DNA from: Pelomyxa schiedti
Lineage: Eukaryota > Protista > Evosea
Assembly: GCA_020536535.1 (NCBI GenBank)
Contig: JAHLWZ010000762.1
Coordinates: forward strand, 1 to 59,801
Reading direction: 5' to 3'
DNA: 59,801 nt
Below, piece after piece: positions 9,721 to 32,287 of the stretch. The stretch's first letter is position 1. Every line of letters starts with the position of its first letter. The translations under genes were made by a program, and so were the position numbers. The notes beneath the pieces were generated by a model, which saw only the letters and a list, made by a program, of their open reading frames with translations, was not told the origin of the DNA and made no database searches.

Positions 9721-11890
9721 GTTCCTTCACAACGTGGCCACATCCTCTTCCTCATCATCATGCTGTTGTAACTATTTCCAAGGGTTGTGACGTGGAACCA
9801 GGTACTTTGGAGTTGCTGCTTCAGCCGGTTACAAGTGTGGATACACTCACGAGCATGATTATTGCAAAACTTGTGATTCCCAACGCATTCCAGGAGTTGG
9901 CTGACGTTATACAAGGCGGGTGGTCGTCGCCTTATGTGGCTGGTGTTCTGGCTCGATGCGACGGTGCCTGGCCCACGCCAAGTGGAAAAGATTTCAATGG
10001 GATGGCAGCGCTATTTATGTTTGTTTTTTCTGAAGCAATCAAAGCGATTCCTGGGGGGAAATTTGTGCACTACTTCACTCCATTGAAAATGACTAGTAGT
10101 GACAAGGAGGACCTGCCTTTAGTTACTGAGATGGCTGGTGCCAATGGCATTCCTGTTCCTAGAGATTCTGTGGACTTGGATTCATTGGATCTGGGATGGC
10201 TCCCCAAACTTCAAGCCGCGAAGCTCTCTGTCAAGGATTTCCGTTACAAGTATGATGATGTGCGCAATGAGTTCGTTGACATTATTGAGGCGTTTTATCT
10301 TACACTGGCCCTTGCCCTTGAGGGACGAGTACTATCAGTCCCAGAACCAGAAAGCCCTTTGAAAACTAGTGCTACTAGTACCGTTCAACAGCAACCGGCA
10401 AGACCATCAAAATTAGCTCCAAAGCCACCTACCATTATTAACAATGCTCCCCGCATATCATTGCAGATGGAGACAATCCAGAGGGCAATGGCGGAATTAG
10501 CACAGGAAGAAGAAGAAGAAGAAGAAGATCTTCGCAAATGTAAAGCCGCGGAAAACACACAACAAACTACAGAACCTCATTCCATAACAACTGCCAGTGC
10601 AGAAGGATCGACCCATTCAACTACAGTGACATCAACAGAACAGCAACCACCCCTGCTAGAACAACTGCAACCATTTCTGATTCAGACAGCCGATGTTGAT
10701 CAAGTGTGCTCCTGGCTTGGATCTGTTGGTGCAGATGACGACTGTCTCAAGTCCATTAGGGTAAACAAACTGCGGGGGAGAACACTTGCCAATTGCACCA
10801 AAGAACAGCTGTGTAACCTTGGCTTTGCATTTGGAGATGCTGCTTTTGTTGTGGAAGAAGTACAATCGCACTTGGAGAGCCAGAGACAACCACAACAAAT
10901 CAGGTTCACTTGATTCAAATTCTTTTTCCTGTAAATAATGGTGCTATTTACCAGTACCGATATAGAGGCTACAAAAGACATGCAACCACAGCTAATGGGT
11001 CTCTCTTTTGAATTTCTTTGTCAAAGCTCACCCCATCTGCAGGAGCAAGATCCCTGTGCGAAATGAACTATAAGTGTTTCGCATTTATTGTTGGAAATGA
11101 AGCTTATGGGCAGTTTTCCCTCAGAAATACTATCAATGATGCGGACTCGGTTTCAAAGGTTACATTCTTTTTTGCAAACACACACACTCAATTCTTGCTG
11201 ACAGTTCTTGAGGACAACATGCCGGTTCGAAGTTGTTTGTCAAAAAAACATCCCCAATCTCCAAGAGTTTGCGACAAACCTGGAGTTATTTAAATCAACA
11301 CTGAAAGAACAAAAGAAGGCAGGAAACAAGGTCCATTTCGTTTCTTTCCTCCAATTCGCACTTACCCATTAATCAGGTTGCGAGTGTATTTTACTTTGCC
11401 GGACATGGCAGGCAGCTTAAAGGGCACAACTTCCTTCTTATGACCGCCACAGAATCGGCATTCACTGAAACCAAGTTTGACCTCCTGAAATACAATACTC
11501 CAATGCTCGGCGCCGTTCTGGACGGAATCCAGAAGCATTCTGACCTTACAATTGGGATACTCGACGCTTGCCGCGAAGCTGATCCCAACGACTCTGATGA
11601 ATTCCGGGTATTTCCCCAGAGTTCCGAATCGCTCACAATCATAAAAAAAGCCTCATGTGGGCCATTTGACTGACACAATAACAGACACGTGGATTTGGTC
11701 CAACTGGACAACGGCTAACAAAGGAGGATTTTCCAGCAGGATGCATTGTAATTTACCCAACAAGCCCCGGTTCCTATTCCCGTTTCATTTTTAAAAATTA
11801 ACAGCCCTTAAATAGGGAAGACAACATTGTATGCGTGTAAATTGCCAAACAGAAGAAACAATGGATTCTTCACTGGGTGCTTCCTTGAAG
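9720..11890 (+). CDS. Unknown domain - SAM - caspase-like (C14, paracaspase-type) protease, copy A; last exon not found
   Basis: SAM: DVDQVCSWLGSVG...LRGRTLANCTKEQLCNLGFAFGD (~10690-10875). Protease exons: FAFIVGNEAY..LRNTINDA, FYFAGHG (His 11404-11406), ILDACR (Cys 11569-11571), NGFFTGCFLE. The Q-x-PW exon seen in copy B is absent. Confidence 0.85.
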
Positions 11891-12578
11891 GTGGGTTCAT
11901 TTTGTTTCGCTTCTTCTGTGTGTTTTCCCATCTTGTGGCTGGCATTAATGTTGGGATGGAGTTTGGGTGCTGGTTAAGTGGGTTTTGTTTCTTGTTTTTT
12001 TTTTAAAATTTTTTGTTGTGTGTTGTGATCAAGCAAGTAGTTTGGGCTTACAGGTTAATGACAGGGGCCACAGAAATCACCAAAAATCAAGGCAAAGTGA
12101 AACGCAAAGCTGTTCTTCACCCAGCACTTTGGGCAAATGAACAAGGGACCAACCAACAGGAGTCATTTGCGGAAACCAAGTGCATTGTGAGTAGACAGGA
12201 GCAAACATAACTCATTGCCAACCATTCAGTGAATTTACATCCCAGAGGCCAAAGCAAGAGAGACAATGAGAAATTATGAAGGAAAGAAGCTCTATACTCG
12301 AGGAAAGAAATCAAAATGGAGTGAAACGAAAGCAAGCACAACGGACATTACCAAGCAATAATGGAATCATTGGCGGATTAACACTCATATTAACTTCAAA
12401 AAAAAAAAAATGCACCAAGCAGCAACGCACATACATATCCGCGATATCGACGCTGTCTCGGCACCATCAGCCCGTCAACTCAACGCACCATCCACGTACC
12501 AACGCCGCCGAGCGACGTGCGTTTTTACGAGTGACCGGCGATTTACCGCTAATTGAAAACATCGCTTATCGATAGCGC

Positions 12579-22980: not shown

Positions 22981-25900
22981 ATGGCTGCAATCATCAGAAT
23001 TGTGAGTGACATGATGAGCGGGTTCACCACAGCGTGCGCTACGGGGCAGCTCCAACGCATCGAGCTTCTCCTCACGTCGCCCAACACCTACTTCCACCCC
23101 GAGGAGATCTCCCGGGGCCTCGTTTCCGCCTGCCGCGAGGGCCACGTCCCCGTCGTCGCCCGCCTCCTCCGCCTCCCCGCCGTCGGAGATCGGTCCGTTC
23201 CTTCGACCTACAGAGGCTTTCTCAGGCACTCCATAAACTACGCCGTACCCTGCGAGGGAACTGGAGGCACAGGCACAGGCACAGGCACAGACACAGGCAC
23301 AGTCTCCGGCACTACGCCGCTCGGCAGCTCCGCCGGACCAGACGAAGCAGTGGAAGGAGTGACCGCGGCGCCTCCTGCAGTAGAGACGGTGCTGGGGGCC
23401 GCCTGTCAGGGGGGCCGCGAGGAGGTGGTCAGGATGCTTCTGAGGGAGCCAGGGATCGAGGCTGGGGTGGGAACCCCGCTGTGCTTCGCGTGTCAGGGGG
23501 GACACTTGATAATAGTCAACATGCTTCTGGAGAAGCTGCTCGATTCCATCAGCACCGACGAGATAGGCAGAAGCCTGGTGGTAGCGTGCAAGAGTGGATT
23601 CTACGGAATCGTGGTGGCGCTGATGGGACTGAAGCCACCCCACATGAAGGTAAACTTGCTGTCCACTATGGTCGCCGGGGAGACTCCACTGTGCACAGCT
23701 TGCGGGGCCGGCGTCTTGGATGTTGTCAACTTGCTGCTGGAGGAAATGGGAAGCAACCCTGTTTACACCAGGGATATATCAGAAGCGTTTGTCATTGCGT
23801 GCAAGGGTGGCTACGTTGACATTGTCAACAAGTTTTTGAGCTTGCCACGGAACATGAGGCCTTCTCTCATACACACGTCGAAGCTGGATAGGACTGCCCT
23901 GAGTGCGGCGTGTGAGGCTGGGCACCGGGCAATCGTGGACTTGCTTCTAAGAGAAGACTTTGATGTCAACCTTGGAAACCCACTGTGGTACGCCTCAATG
24001 AACAATCACTTGGAAATTGTTAGGAGTTTGTTGAGGAATCCCACCATTACCGTGAACAAAATGCTAGAGAACAAAACGCCACTTGTCGTTGCCATTCTTC
24101 ACAATCAGATTGATAAAGACTTCCTTGTTGCCCGAGTGCTGATTTCACATTCTGGTTTGATTCCACCGCATTGCCAAGAAGCAGTTGTAAGAAAACTTAG
24201 GGGGCATAAAAAATTTTGTGAGCTCTTACAACTCGGTATGATCAAACAAATGAATAGTTGCTTCGAAATTAACGTGATGATACAGCAACCAGCATTGAGC
24301 TTGCAAATTTATTGTTGGATCGCCAACACCCAAGTTGAACTTTGTTTCCATTTGATTTTTCTCACAACTTTTTAGATTTTCAACCGGAAATAAGGAACAC
24401 AGGGAGAGAAAGTGACAGGGAAGAAATTCTCGAACTTAAGAAGAGTTCCACGCCCCTGTGTTTTTGAAAGTACTTACACCCTCCAAAGAGAATGCCGACC
24501 TGGAAGCGCGAATCACAAGAATTCAGGAAGAAAGGGCATCGGACTTGGCAGAAAGCAAACTCAACCAACAGATATCTTATGAAATCCAAAATTGTATGTA
24601 TCACTCACTAGCCAACCCTTAGTGAAATTACTGTGTCAACCATCTATCAGATACCGATCACGTGCTGGCACATGTCTCAGGAGGCTCGTGGTGCAATGTA
24701 CTTCCTGACGGCAGTTGCAAGAAGGGCCAAATCAAAATTTGGTTTGAAGAGTCTCCCTCCTTTGATGAAATTGTGTGCTATTCTTGCCCTCTCGACATGG
24801 TACTTGTACTTCTCTCTGTGATTTTTTTAATTATCTCTCCCAAAGGCTGCCAAGATCATCGTCACAAGAAAGTTTGGTTTTGACACCAAAGAACTAGTCG
24901 TCACGGCGGTTGGAGCAGACAACTCATCAGAAGAACTGTTGACGGACACGAACAGAACTCTGACAGACCTTCAGCAAGGCAGCAGTGGTGCTGATAAGGT
25001 TACACAGATTAAAGTCAGAATAACTTCCCTGGTGAGATTCCAAGAGAGCGACCTAAAGGTGGTGAGCACACTGGGGGTGGGGTCATATGGAACAGTTTTC
25101 AAGTGCCTCCACATCCCAACAAACACATATGTGGCAGTGAAGGCTCTTCACGAGGCTATCCGGTCTGAGTTCAACAACACCCGTTTTTGGGAGGAATTCG
25201 CGGTATTTTTGTCCACCTTCCTCCCCAAAGCTTTTGAAACTAATGCAATTCAATTCAATCACCAGATTCATTCTCGAATGAGACACCCGAACATCGTGAG
25301 ATGCCTTGGGACATGCGTTACCATCACTGGTGGACCCTGGATCGTCTCCGAACTCATGGAAATGAACCTTCGGCAGCTCCTTCAGCGGGTTTGTTATGAT
25401 CGTTCTCTATTCCTCGAGATAATTGCAAACAGAGAAGTTTGAGCTTTCAGGAAGTCATTGCACTCTCGTTGGGAATTTGCAGAGGTGTGGCCGCACTTCA
25501 CAAGTATTGTTTAACCCAATTTTACTTGGATGATGTTAATCAGGAGGAATATCATACATCGCGACTTGAGCAGCAACAATGTTCTCCTGGATTCTCATGG
25601 GATTCCAAAGATAACCGACTTTGGTTTTCAACACTCCATTTTCCGATTACTTCATGACAGTGTTCATTGAACAGGTGTGTCACGTGTTATCAGAAGTGTG
25701 CTTGTTTCAACTTTTTCCATTGCCGGTACACCCATTTATGTGGCTCCGCAGATGCACACTCGTCACTATGGAATCCAAGGTATGTTCTCACCTTTTTTGT
25801 TGTGCCATTTATCCCCATCATTTCGCACAGGAGATATGTGGGAAATTGCAGTTTTACTGAGTGAGATGCTGAATGGAACAATAACAGTAGGACACCCAGG

Positions 25901-26785: not shown

Positions 26786-29126
26786 TCAATGGAAGAAAAT
26801 GTTGCTGCAGAAGTCATGGATTTGGTTGAGTGAGAGTCCATATTCACGCATTGTGAAGAGTGCAATGTGTGGTGACATTACCACAAACTGCATAAAATGC
26901 TCCTGTATCATGGTGGCATCAATGCTTGGATATTTTCTCAGAAGTATCTTCCACGCTGCAAGGTTCATATCACTGGGGGCATACACCTTTGGCAGGAAGC
27001 CTTTGGCCATTTCAATAATCTGAATGACGCATGGGTTTGCTGTTGTTAAGAGGGGAAAGGAAAGATACATCAGCAAGAGGGATGTCAAAGGAGTCAAGGA
27101 GCCACTTTGCACACCTGCTTTTCCCCAGGTTCAGCAGGGTGAGGAGTAGTTTGTTGTTCTCAAGCTTGATGTGGTTGTACTGCAGATTGAACCTTGAAAT
27201 CACCCACTTGATAGCCTTGCTGGAGGATAAATAGTAACTACTTGATATCAGGCACTTGCCCACGAAGTCTGGGGTTAACAATGATGAGGAACCAAATGAT
27301 GACATGAACCTCTCCTTGAATTGGAAATTAGACAGGAAGGAGTCAAAGGCATCTGAAACAGACAGAGCATCTCCCTGTAGGTTAAAACCAGGAAACATAT
27401 CCAGTAACAAAAATGCAGAATTCAAGTGTGCACAGTGCAGTGCTCTTGTGAATGCAACATGAATAGATTTTTCACTGATCCTAAAAGGCTGTGAGAGGTG
27501 TTGAATGAGCCACTTCAAGCCTGAAACGTTGTTGGACCCACTGACTCCCTCTAAATACTTGAATATTCCAACCAACATCCTTCCAGCAGCCACAGGGTCA
27601 GAGTTGACAACATCCATCACGTGGAATCTTTCCTGCAACCATTCAGCAATCTCTGTGTTGTTCCAGACAAGTGCCTGTGTCATAGATTTGATGAGGTCAT
27701 CTTGTGTGAGTGTGACTCTTGTTGAAACCCACTTTGCAAGTGATGACCCTCGTTCCATTTGAATGGAGCATGCCGAGACAAACGTTGATGGGGTTGGTTT
27801 AAAGTCTGGCCTCTCGGTGACGAGCCACTCTGCAAGTGATACATCCCCAACGTTCTCAAAGACTATACCCCAGGTTGATTGCAGGATACTGTGAGTATCG
27901 GCTGGTAGCTTTGACAGGACCCACTTCACAACCTCAACAGTTCTGGCGTCACACAGAAGAGACTCACAAACTTCACCATCAACGCAGAATTCACAGTCGT
28001 CTGCAGTGCTATGGGTGTTCTTCACCAGGAGACCCATAATAAGGTACCTGTCAACGACTGTGGACACTTGGAGTTTTTCAACACACCATTTGAAATTGCA
28101 AGGAGCTTCACCCATTGCGCACCGTTCAGCAATCTCCACAAGTTCAGATTGGGGTAGACGCTTCACCAAGTCGAACTCATCCAAAAGCCAGTTGACTGCT
28201 TCCATCCTCCCATGATACAGTGAGAAACGCAGGGGTTGGCGCAAAGCCCAAGGTGCCTCATCCCACCCAATCCTGAGTGCAGACAGCAACCACTTCACAG
28301 CACCAACATCGACTCCCCCACATCCATTAACCATCGCCTTCAAGTCATTCACTGATGATTTGATGTGCTCTCTCACTCTTTCCCTGAACTGACCTCTTTT
28401 TGCCTCTTTCTCTGACGAGCTGAAACAGCCAGAATCGGCAGTCCCATCACCAGTTCCGACTTGCCAATAACATGCCCTGCACCACCTCTCAATACGGCGC
28501 CCATCCCACAGCAATGGCAACGTGCCCACAACAGCAGCAGCAGAAGAAGAAGAAGACTCAGAGGCAGCACTCGCACCGCAGTCACCATCGCCAAGCAAGG
28601 CACGAGCGTGTTTCACGTGGCCACCGCAGCACAACCCAACAAGCACTGCCGTCACCTCCTTCACCACAACTTCACAGTAATCCAAAGTAGCAGAGTCATT
28701 AGAATCCCCACGTCGCGGAACACCCAGAGGAATCCCGGGCGCCTCTCCTCCCGTAATAATAATCCCGCCGCCGGCGCGGCCGCCGCCACGTTCCGGGAGC
28801 CTGTGCCTGTTGGCCGCGATCCAGGCCACGCACGAGGGGCTTGGCACCGCCGCGGCGCTGCGCAGGGCCGCGTACGAGCCGCCGGCGGCGTCGGCGAGGG
28901 AGAGCACGCGGGAGCACACGAGGGGCACCAGGGGGAACACGGCCTCCGCCGCGGCCAGCAGCGACCCGTGGCAGCGCCAGCGCCCAGCCCCGTCGTCGTC
29001 GTACTTGGGGCGGCCCCCCACAGAGTCCAGCTCCTCGTCGAGGAGCCCGCGGGACACCGCGCAGTCCCACACGAGTCGCGACACCCTCACTGCCGCCTCC
29101 ATCCCTCGAGCACGAGCCTTGTTCAT
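26786..29126 (-). CDS. Degenerate ankyrin-like repeat protein (expanded family), copy B
   Basis: 721-aa ORF plus a terminal exon (intron ~27020-27068). Motifs SRLVWD, AEAVFPLV, KEVTAVLVGLCCGGH. The last intron is at an equivalent position to that of copy A. Confidence 0.85.
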
Positions 29127-29351: not shown

Positions 29352-32287
29352 TTAGAACAGAGCGAAACGGGCACCAACACTCTTTGATAGCCAAGGGGAC
29401 TGTTCACCATTGGACTGTGACTGCACCATCAAAATGGTGTCATCAACAATGTCCCCAAATGGTGTCCCTGGTTGTGCCCTCTCTGCAACTTTTTGTGTCG
29501 TTACGTTTTTGTTTTTTTTTTTTTTGCTGGGTGAAGCGTGGAACATGGATACCTTCAAGGAAACAGCCAGTAAAGAATCCATTGTTCTTGTGGTTTGACA
29601 ACTTGCATGCATCCAGTGTTGTCTTTCCTGTAATGGACAAAATTAGTTACAGTAGGAAAAATTAGGGAACAAAATTTCGAAAAAACCTGGGCTTGTTGGG
29701 TAAATTACAATGCATCCTTCTGGAAAATCCTCTTTAGTCATTGACGACGACTGTGTGGAGCCAAATCCACGTGTCTGAGGTTATGAAAAGTGTTAAATCA
29801 GAGCCCAGAGGGGATGCGTTGTAGCAAGAATTGTTTGTTGTGCAAAACAAAAAGAAATATAAATTAGCACCCGGAACTCATCCCGGTCGTCCTTATCCGA
29901 CTGCCGGCAGGCGTCAAGGATCCCAATGGTGAGGTCAGAGTGTCCCTTGATTTCATCTAACACACTACCAAGCATCGGGGCTGTGTACTTCATGACGCCA
30001 AAGTTGGTTTCAGTGAAAGCCACCTCATCTGATGTCATGAGCAGGAAGTTGTGCCCTTTGATTTGCCTGCCATGCCCTGCAAAGTAAAAAATGCTCGCGA
30101 CCTGCATTTTGTTGTTGAGTTGTCGCTTTGTGAAATGTAAATGCCTGGGACCTTGTTTCTTCCCTTCCGTTGCCCTTTCAAGGTTGATTTGAACTTTTCC
30201 AGTTTGCTAGCAAAATCCAGGATGTTTGAGATATTAACGTGACACACAACTTCAAACTTGCATGTGGTCCTCAAGAACTGGTAAAAAAATTAAAGTGGTG
30301 TGAGCAAAAATTTGAGTAATCTGGGGGGATAGGTAACCAGAGAAACACTTTCTGCGTCATTGATGGCATTCTTGAGGGGAAGCTGACCATATGCTTCATT
30401 TCCAATAACAAACGCAAAGCATTTGTAATTCAGCTCGGGACTAGAAAGAGTTGGGCATCCTGTAAAATGAAAATAGCACATTATGATAGAAGTTTGCAAC
30501 AGCAATTAAATGCAGGTACTGGCTTTTCTTTCCAATGTCTCAAGTTGTGCCTGCAAGTCTTTGATCAACACAGACCGACTACGTTTTGTTTTCAGTATGT
30601 GAACTCAGTGCTTGATAAAAGAGAGAAGGGGTGTTTGATGCACAAAACTGTGATGAAAGAGAGCATCGTGGTCGCTGCTGCTGTTGGCTGGCAAGATGAG
30701 ATCTAACCTCTTCTACAATGAATTCTGCATCACCAACAACAATCCCAAGGTTACAGAGTTGCTGCACTGTGTAATTGGCAAGTGTCCTCCCACGTATTTT
30801 ATTTGATCGGATAACATTGAGGCAACCATCATCCACACCAACAACTCCAAGCCACAGGCACAATTGATCCACGTTGGCTGCTAAAAGAGAAAATGCTGGT
30901 GGTTGTGATGAATCATGTGGCACGTTCCCTGGGAAAGCTTCTGCTTCTGTATTTGTTGAAGGGTGTGGCACAATGTTCTCTGATTTTGATGTCAAATCCA
31001 CCAGGGTTTTTGGGGATGGCGGTAATGAAGGTGAGTCTGGTGCAGCTTGAACTGATGCTGAAAGGGGGTTGGTAGGTATGGTTTCTGGTTGTATCCCTGT
31101 GGGAATTTGAGTTGAACTTACAAGGGGCTGGTTAAGTGCTGGTGGTTCTGGGGGTAAATTTGGTGGCTTGGGAGTTCCAATGGAAGCAGTAGTTCCAAGG
31201 GAGGTGGCATTCAAAGAAGCAGGGCTTTGGGATATTGAATCCTTGTCATCTTGGAGACCCAGAGCAAGGGACACATAAAAGGCTTCAATTATATCAAGGA
31301 ACGTGTCCCGGACCTCTTCATACCGCTCACACCTGTCGCCTACCGGAATTTCCTCCTTGTCAAGTGCAGGGATCCATGCCAATCCCAATTCCTCAAAGTT
31401 CACTGAGTCACGCGGAACTGGGGCTCCGTTGGAGCCAAGCACCGTACCGATATCCGGCAGGTAGGTGGACATATGGCCTCTGACCCTGCTGCGTCGTGTG
31501 GGTGTGAGACCACAGTGCCCCGCTCCCCAGGGAGTGCTCGGCAGAGAGTGTGAGCAAAGAACGCAAAGAACCAGGCAGGGACCCCCCATTGCGGCGCGGA
31601 GCCCCAGGGCATGGTGATGTGCCCGGAACGAAAGTTAGGCACTCCCGCGGGGTCTGGCATCATCGCGGCCAGCCGGCGTAGGACGTAGTGCATCCATTCC
31701 GCGTACGAATGGTCGCTCGCGATGTCCGCCACGCGCGTAAACTCGGCCGTCACGCACTCGGGGTCTATCGTGAAGCAGTCCTCGTTGTGGATTTCCAAAC
31801 CCACAAAAACGACCATGAGGGGCACGCCCACCGAGGAGGGGAGTGGGTGCTTTAACGAGATTGCCGACCTGGCGCAGTCGTAAGTGGCCTGGTCGCCCTT
31901 GGCAACTACCGCGATGGCAAAGTCGAACACCCCGCCTCCTGGTGGAGGTAATACGCCAGAGGCACAGCCGTAAGACGACGAGGAGGAAGAGGAAGAGGAA
32001 GAGGAAGAGGAAGAGGAAGAGGAAGAGGAAGAGGAAGAGGAAGAGGAAGAGGAAGAGGACGGAGGGCGAACGAGGTGCCTGTGGATCAAGGGTACGCCGC
32101 AGGACCGGAGCAGGAGCTCGGCCACCAGGGCGTATGGCGCCACACGTGGGGCGAAGCATAGACAGCAACGGTCGGTTGCAGACACCTTCGGGCGCTGTGG
32201 CTGCGGCGCGGCCTGCCGCGAGGCTCCCCGCGTGCTTGTTTCGTTACCCGTTTTTGTTTCCCTTTGAATGTTGGGAGATTCAGGCAC
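29352..32287 (-). CDS. (Degenerate GTPase-like?) - unknown domain - SAM - caspase-like (paracaspase-type) protease, copy B; complete C-terminus
   Basis: SAM at ~30695-30885. Protease motifs FAFVIGNEAY..LKNAINDA, FYFAGHG (His 30072-30074), ILDACR (Cys 29907-29909), NGFFTGCFLE, GEQSPWLSKS, then stop at 29352. One frameshift at ~31500. Start codon unresolved. Confidence 0.88.
31981..32058. repeat. (GAGGAA)n microsatellite, polySer on the minus strand
   Basis: About 12-13 hexamer units. Confidence 0.95.

Follow-up and report, generated by a model that had tools for sequence, protein, structure and literature searches.

A family of SAM-linked, MALT1-like C14 proteases with variable front parts in Pelomyxa schiedti, and two apparently damaged copies of it on one contig

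The window that we analysed is contig JAHLWZ010000762.1 (C762; the whole stretch of 59,801 nucleotides) of the 52-Mb assembly of Pelomyxa schiedti, an anaerobic amoeba, and our subject is a pair of related genes in it, gene A on the minus strand and gene B on the plus strand. Both belong to a family in which a constant cassette, made up of a SAM domain and, after it, a MALT1-like protease of the C14 (caspase-like) type, stands behind a front part that differs from member to member, and we infer for this family a switch in which a sensor leads to clustering and clustering to proteolysis. We give this reading a probability of roughly 0.55. The cassette family itself is a matter of observation and comprises about 24-25 loci in this genome. 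A first-pass annotation of the window, made from its letters alone, had proposed such a device in an amoeboid protist, and an amoeboid protist is indeed the source of the DNA.

The catalytic exon of the protease has 29 matches in the genome and so does the SAM profile; at 24 of the 29 protease-exon loci the catalytic exon is preceded, at a distance of 0.5-0.9 kb and on the same strand, by a SAM domain, and the cassette is ~60% identical among members. One unbroken open frame on each of the contigs C100, C2001 and C448 encodes the front domain, the SAM domain and the first part of the protease. For this reason SAM and protease are parts of a single gene, as the first-pass annotation had it, and on these contigs their fusion is no artefact of gene models. 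The catalytic His and Cys are both kept at 22 of the 29 loci, genes A and B included, while one or both are lost at the remaining 7, for example by Cys to Phe changes on C100 (L004) and C2001 (L003), a His to Ser change in one copy on C448 (L009) and a His to Tyr change on C290 (L027). The dyad-less members on these four contigs retain their SAM domain; they are candidate pseudo-proteases, reminiscent of the pseudo-orthocaspases of bacteria.

A hidden Markov model of the cassette returned 25,849 matches among 1.84 billion representative proteins, and within the best 150 of these a SAM domain was carried by Pelomyxa proteins only. According to the first-pass annotation the architecture is not known to have been characterised, and a literature search for SAM combined with a paracaspase, metacaspase or caspase likewise found no paper describing it, although this search did not cover InterPro architectures and SAM with C14 may exist in unrelated lineages. 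A literature search for caspases of Pelomyxa or Mastigamoeba also found nothing relevant.

We derived the exons of gene A from its sequence, guided by homology to its closest paralog, P0004 on contig C979, of which residues 61-804 are covered by tblastn. The exons were searched singly; P0004, an intact paralog, and P0005, the annotated product of gene B, were the proxies for whole proteins. From the stop codon at 29354-29352 the locus can be followed upstream on the minus strand to 32287, as far as its open frame reaches, and its introns, 50-96 nt long, are GT-AG in 7 of 7 cases. Genes A and B agree in what the first-pass annotation had described for them, namely a conserved upstream domain, a linker rich in Pro, Ser and Thr, a SAM domain and a C14 protease, in that order. 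Both contain the motifs FYFAGHG and ILDACR, and with them the catalytic dyad. The claim of common intron positions holds as well, since positions and phases agree exon for exon (seven positions in common), and E4, E5 and E7 have the same lengths in both genes (126, 231 and 75 nt).

The protease is recognised by Pfam even in fragments: Peptidase_C14 (PF00656) matches exon 5 of gene A alone at 22.5 bits (cut-off 21.4), gene A in six frames at 26.4 bits and P0005 at 62.5 bits. The catalytic His of gene A is encoded at 30074-30072 and the Cys at 29909-29907, with an Asp two residues ahead of the Cys; P0004 is ~90% identical to gene A in the catalytic exon. A profile built from the family only, compared with PDB, matches nothing but MALT1 entries at E <=0.01 (best 2.9e-4), and when the nearest relatives are added to the profile MALT1 reaches 1.6e-33, with caspase-1 next at 1.2e-11. 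Structural comparison of an AlphaFold2 (AF2) model of P0004 points the same way. Foldseek gives MALT1 9e-15 versus ~1e-9 for caspases, and in a VIA alignment MALT1 has Z 25.3 (219 residues aligned, 20% identity), compared with ~22.8-22.1 for caspase-9, -8 and -3. Judged from this model, the domain has a caspase-hemoglobinase fold and its closest solved structure is MALT1. Metacaspases are absent from the 60 best profile matches and from the 50 best structural matches, and the Cys motif reads D-A-C-R. Scans with PADLOC and NCBIfam added weak generic caspase matches and nothing more.

Acidic residues (Asp, Asp and Asp/Glu) are kept in the family in the columns aligned to D365, D462 and E500 of MALT1 (numbered as in the literature), the positions of the acidic S1 pocket that makes MALT1 Arg-specific. 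Given this conservation and what is established for MALT1 and metacaspases, the acidic S1 positions predict, by analogy, cleavage after Arg or Lys.

The closeness to MALT1 in structure should not be taken for close descent. The nearest relatives outside Pelomyxa that we checked among the profile matches are bacterial or metagenomic proteins of the caspase family, including a protein of Microcystis aeruginosa, fusions with GUN4, TPR, CHAT or SH3 domains and a protein whose contig has XisI and OmpA neighbours. Their identity to the Pelomyxa protease is ~23-36%. Since the Pelomyxa-only profile scores MALT1 at ~23 bits and the bacterial homologues at 100-174 bits, the protease is, on sequence grounds, an orthocaspase-like, MALT1-like C14 domain and not an ortholog of animal paracaspases. 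The name paracaspase used in the first-pass annotation thus stands as far as structure is concerned, but not for the nearest sequence relatives, which are bacterial caspase homologues rather than animal paracaspases.

Comparison with these two groups is instructive. With MALT1 the family has in common the fold and the profile match, an aligned His/Cys dyad with three acidic S1 residues, and an oligomerising domain, putative in Pelomyxa, upstream of the protease. It differs in that the Pelomyxa genes have, according to Pfam, no death domain and no Ig domains, and a SAM domain occupies that place; no Pfam match to Death or Ig domains flanking the protease was found in the exons or in the paralogs. 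A six-frame search of the assembly for Death and CARD domains gave no match either, but its search control was uninformative. With bacterial orthocaspases, the nearest sequence relatives, the family has the YFAGHG and ILDACR motifs in common, and dyad-less pseudo-variants occur in both groups. On the other hand, the Pelomyxa genes are eukaryotic, lie on a nuclear contig and are interrupted by seven GT-AG spliceosomal introns, and none of the nearest bacterial matches that we examined has a SAM domain. Cleavage after basic residues has been reported for orthocaspases (PMC6426788, PMC5756287).

The SAM domain needs more argument, as the Pfam model SAM_1, run on single regions, scores gene A at 14.4 bits and gene B at 16.4 bits, both under the cut-off of 23. 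The paralog P0015 reaches 55 bits in the same alignment columns, which is above the cut-off. A family profile built from 13 members gave 43 matches in PDB at E <=1, and 42 of the 43 are SAM domains. The best of them is liprin-beta (1.3e-6), and others include CNK2, DGK-delta, SHANK, SAMHD1 and SARM1. When the family SAM profile is run on the genome of Pelomyxa itself, the SAM domain of gene A scores 137 bits. The AF2 model of P0004, which covers residues 440-804 with a mean pLDDT (predicted local distance difference test) of 89, contains a SAM domain, a linker helix and a caspase fold in that order. Its predicted SAM domain has five helices (11-20, 25-33, 38-42, 46-51 and 56-75), and the mean pLDDT per block of ten residues is 95-97 over residues 11-70. 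The SAM fold proposed in the first-pass annotation was therefore recovered in two ways, and the identity of the domain is supported by the family profile and by the five-helix model of a paralog.

What precedes the cassette is far less uniform. The annotated members carry Sel1 repeats, leucine-rich repeats (LRR), MORN repeats, ankyrin repeats with a PARP regulatory domain, a TRAPPC13-like part with a Ras GTPase, a second, altered caspase domain or, as in genes A and B, the orphan domain. Such variable front parts are compatible with a logic of sensor, adaptor and effector.

The orphan domain is present at about a dozen loci of the genome. Its intact copies open with MGN and continue into a Cys-rich strand; an MGN start is a motif typical of N-myristoylation. 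We take it to be an alpha/beta domain that is probably N-myristoylated. An AF2 model of the C448 copy (pLDDT 73.8; pTM, the predicted template modelling score, 0.78) shows a flavodoxin-like alpha/beta arrangement in its first half. VIA finds generic flavodoxin-like matches only for this model, with TIR, flavodoxin, REC and GTPase folds tied at Z 6-8.5. Other searches with the domain were negative: no match in Pfam, chance matches only in the PDB profile search (E >=0.4), no match at E <=0.001 with Foldseek, TM-scores <0.5 in a shape search of the ESM Atlas, and Pelomyxa proteins only in word-based homology searches. We considered whether the domain could be TIR-like and found this unsupported, as TIR is tied with other generic folds and no specific relative emerges; a degenerate caspase is likewise unsupported, the hhalign comparison with a caspase profile being negative. 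To call the domain a sensor, as the first-pass annotation did, is an assumption on our part too. Its conservation was correctly noticed; the domain itself is an orphan, and its fold is flavodoxin-like in no more than a generic way.

Two observations on the orphan domain deserve mention. In gene A it contains a microsatellite that encodes ~28 serines, and the paralogs have shorter inserts of Ser, Pro and Thr in the same loop. On contig C1366 (L005, 21-2705, minus strand) an open frame of 895 residues places two tandem orphan front domains before one SAM domain.

How could such a protein work? Death-fold platforms usually activate caspase-fold proteases by bringing them close together, and we infer, purely by analogy, an activation by SAM clustering in the Pelomyxa family. 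The front part would bind a ligand or a membrane. SAM-SAM contacts, either homotypic or between paralogs, would then bring protease domains together, and a proximity-driven dimerisation as in MALT1 would turn on cleavage after Arg or Lys. Members without the dyad may act as modulators.

The arrangement resembles SARM1 (ARM-SAM-SAM-TIR), which also consists of a sensor or autoinhibitory part, a SAM oligomeriser and an enzyme that depends on proximity, the oligomer being putative in Pelomyxa, and the SAM domain of SARM1 is among the matches of the Pelomyxa SAM profile. In Pelomyxa, however, a protease takes the place of the TIR NADase as effector, and one SAM domain that of the tandem pair. The death-fold platforms (inflammasome, apoptosome and the CBM complex, named after CARD, BCL10 and MALT1) offer another parallel, with their variable sensors (LRR, repeats, GTPase), an oligomerisation domain and a caspase-fold protease. 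The difference is that in Pelomyxa a single chain holds all of this, and an NTPase of the NACHT or NB-ARC type was not seen in this subfamily.

Several points weigh against a sensor-clustering-protease switch in genes A and B. The ability to polymerise cannot be read from a SAM sequence, and the PDB matches are a mixture of polymeric and monomeric SAM domains. The searches made with the front domain brought up no ligand-binding relative that could be recognised. The structure models are those of paralogs (P0004 and the C448 copy) and not of gene A itself. Finally, gene A has no ATG and carries a frameshift, and gene B has no last exon on this contig.

The last point leads to the rival explanation that we take most seriously, although we lean against it: gene A, and gene B likewise, may be a dying pseudogene, so that the architecture is real for the family and this locus makes no functional protein. 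The first-pass annotation was right about the locus and its architecture, and missed the defects in this two-copy picture, that is, the ACG start and the frameshift in gene A and the loss of the last exon in gene B. In gene A no ATG stands at the expected position, where there is an ACG, and the reading frame changes within the front domain at a 7-nt gap relative to the C979 paralog. Further, no annotated protein 100% identical to gene A was among the proteins retrieved. The family also displays signs of birth and death, including in-frame stops in four copies of exon 5, seven losses of the dyad and a fragment on C1132 that consists of N1 (the first half of the front domain) only.

Against this, all seven small exons of gene A downstream of the frameshift are open, with intact GT-AG sites. 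The ratio of nonsynonymous to synonymous substitution rates (dN/dS) between gene A and the C979 copy is 0.10-0.13 on exons 5-8, the catalytic exon having the lowest value, 0.26-0.52 on SAM and exons 3-4, and 0.36-0.44 on the front domain. The values on exons 5-8 indicate long purifying selection on both copies, and thus the protease part was under such selection until recently or is so still. The N1 frame is open for 257 codons, and its dN/dS is 0.43 even against the other copy with an ACG. Moreover, the frameshift may be an error of a single-cell assembly. That other copy, on C1132 (L012, ~1290), has ACG at the start position too (the contexts are AAAACGG and AGAACGG), and its N1 DNA is 77% identical to that of gene A. 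It is possible that an ACG common to these two copies reflects non-AUG initiation, an upstream exon that we do not see, or constraint in one lineage only. Given the damage to the front domain in the assembly (ACG for ATG and one frameshift), either gene A was disabled recently, or it would be made as an N-terminally shortened SAM-protease from the ATG at 31589 in the downstream frame.

In gene B, similarity to the family ends at 11924, in the intron after exon 7, beyond which the contig diverges, and no canonical last exon follows on contig C762 within 4 kb. A contig of 2 kb, C1858 (L033, 1-504), is 98.3% identical to positions 11578-11924 of the window, introns included, and then proceeds into the canonical last exon. 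For this reason the break in gene B is either a haplotype, a rearranged or very recent copy, or an assembly join. Since both copies in the window carry defects, both are poor representatives of their family.

A second rival concerns the role of the SAM domain. It may be a module for docking or localisation (a heterotypic SAM-SAM adaptor, or a binder of lipid or RNA), with the protease regulated through autoinhibition by the front domain, through calcium or through a ligand. We consider this unlikely, yet it deserves discussion, because numerous SAM domains exist as monomers or pair into defined heterodimers and the SAM domains of CNK2, SAMHD1 and Eph receptors are among the profile matches. 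The long disordered linker (~90-150 residues) between the front part and SAM also speaks for it. However, behind a varying front part the SAM domain immediately precedes the protease at each of the 24 loci, and it occupies the place that oligomerising death folds have in caspases. MALT1-like proteases require dimerisation, and paralogs that have lost Cys or His still retain SAM, which is consistent with co-assembly.

It is tempting to go further in the direction of clustering and to speculate that the ~25 paralogs, with their near-identical SAM domains, co-assemble into a mixed, membrane-anchored polymer that pools their sensors, in which an Arg-specific paracaspase fires and the Cys-less members serve as decoys. 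We regard this as rather improbable; if true, it would be an independent invention of filament-type signalling in immunity or cell death, in an amoeba with bacterial and archaeal endosymbionts.

Least probable by far, in our opinion, is that the cassette is mainly a non-catalytic scaffold whose caspase-like domain is an interaction module (a pseudo-protease). This would suit the loss of Cys or His in several paralogs (Phe replaces Cys on C100 and C2001, Ser replaces His in the C448 copy, and Tyr replaces His on C290) and has a precedent in bacterial pseudo-orthocaspases with Tyr/Ser for His/Cys (PMC6426788), but is at odds with the retention of His, Cys and the acidic pocket residues at 22 of the 29 loci, genes A and B included, and with the lowest dN/dS being that of the catalytic exon.

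We believe that the family merits attention in spite of the condition of its two members in the window. A family that has SAM in the position of the death fold, behind exchangeable parts resembling sensors, would demonstrate more than one origin of this signalling logic, and would offer a simple one-chain system for the study of proximity signalling. Pelomyxa schiedti is host to several prokaryotic endosymbionts (PMC10579272), and given their presence the SAM-protease family could bear on how protists police intracellular microbes. The value of this particular locus is lower, since both copies look damaged.

Table 1. Positions of the parts of genes A and B in the window, with the defects of both copies
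Feature	Positions	Strand	Remark
Gene A, whole locus: orphan domain, linker, SAM, paracaspase-like protease	29352-32287	minus	from open reading frame pieces and splice sites
Gene A, ACG in place of the expected ATG	32251-32249	minus	codes for the first residue of the MGN start, Met, in the C979 paralog
Gene A, front domain, first half (N1)	31517-32236	minus, frame -2	from alignment with paralogs
Gene A, (TCC/TCT)n microsatellite, poly-Ser insert in front domain	31975-32058	minus	read from the sequence
Gene A, change of frame from -2 to -1	31505-31515 (at ~31510/31509)	minus	7-nt gap versus paralog C979
Gene A, front domain, second half (N2), conserved domain common with gene B	31170-31508	minus, frame -1
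Gene A, Pro/Ser/Thr-rich linker, probably disordered	30900-31169	minus	from translation
Gene A, SAM domain	30660-30899	minus
Gene A, E1, single large exon	ends 30649	minus
Gene A, E2, short helical linker between SAM and protease	30578-30520	minus	helix 86-105 in the P0004 model; length variable among paralogs
Gene A, E3, first protease strand, Asp aligned to MALT1 D365	30459-30338	minus
Gene A, E4, protease domain, 126 nt	30277-30152	minus
Gene A, E5, catalytic exon, 231 nt	30101-29871	minus	Pfam Peptidase_C14 match
Gene A, E6, protease domain	29774-29687	minus
Gene A, E7, 75 nt, Asp aligned to MALT1 E500	29627-29553	minus
Gene A, E8, final helix and strand of the protease fold, stop codon	29488-29352	minus
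Gene B, part of annotated protein P0005 (Pelo_9683)	9783-11890	plus	exons derived from P0005
Gene B, exons	9783-10903, 10955-10998, 11043-11158, 11205-11330, 11377-11607, 11685-11769, 11816-11890	plus
Gene B, N2 domain	9936-10340	plus
Gene B, SAM domain	10671-10901	plus	linker before, protease exons E2-E7 after
Gene B, last 34 nt homologous to the family	11891-11924	plus	in the intron after exon 7; the contig diverges beyond

Some further features lie near the two genes or elsewhere in the genome. An open frame of 704 residues (27015-29126, minus strand) adjoins gene A downstream, and its sole domain hint is a weak match to Ank_4 (ankyrin). At positions 24464-25013 of the window (plus strand) there is another paralogous fragment; it resembles, at 40-45% identity, the section of the gene B model upstream of N2 (residues 297-471 of P0005). 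Outside the SAM family, Peptidase_C14 matches occur at C511:3452-4195, C511:41952-42630, C511:59664-60443, C165:21659-22336 and C1049:12672-12914. They may be plain metacaspase-like genes, or the protease domain of the family may derive from them, and one of them is full-length, with a score of 115 bits, in an open frame of 449 residues.

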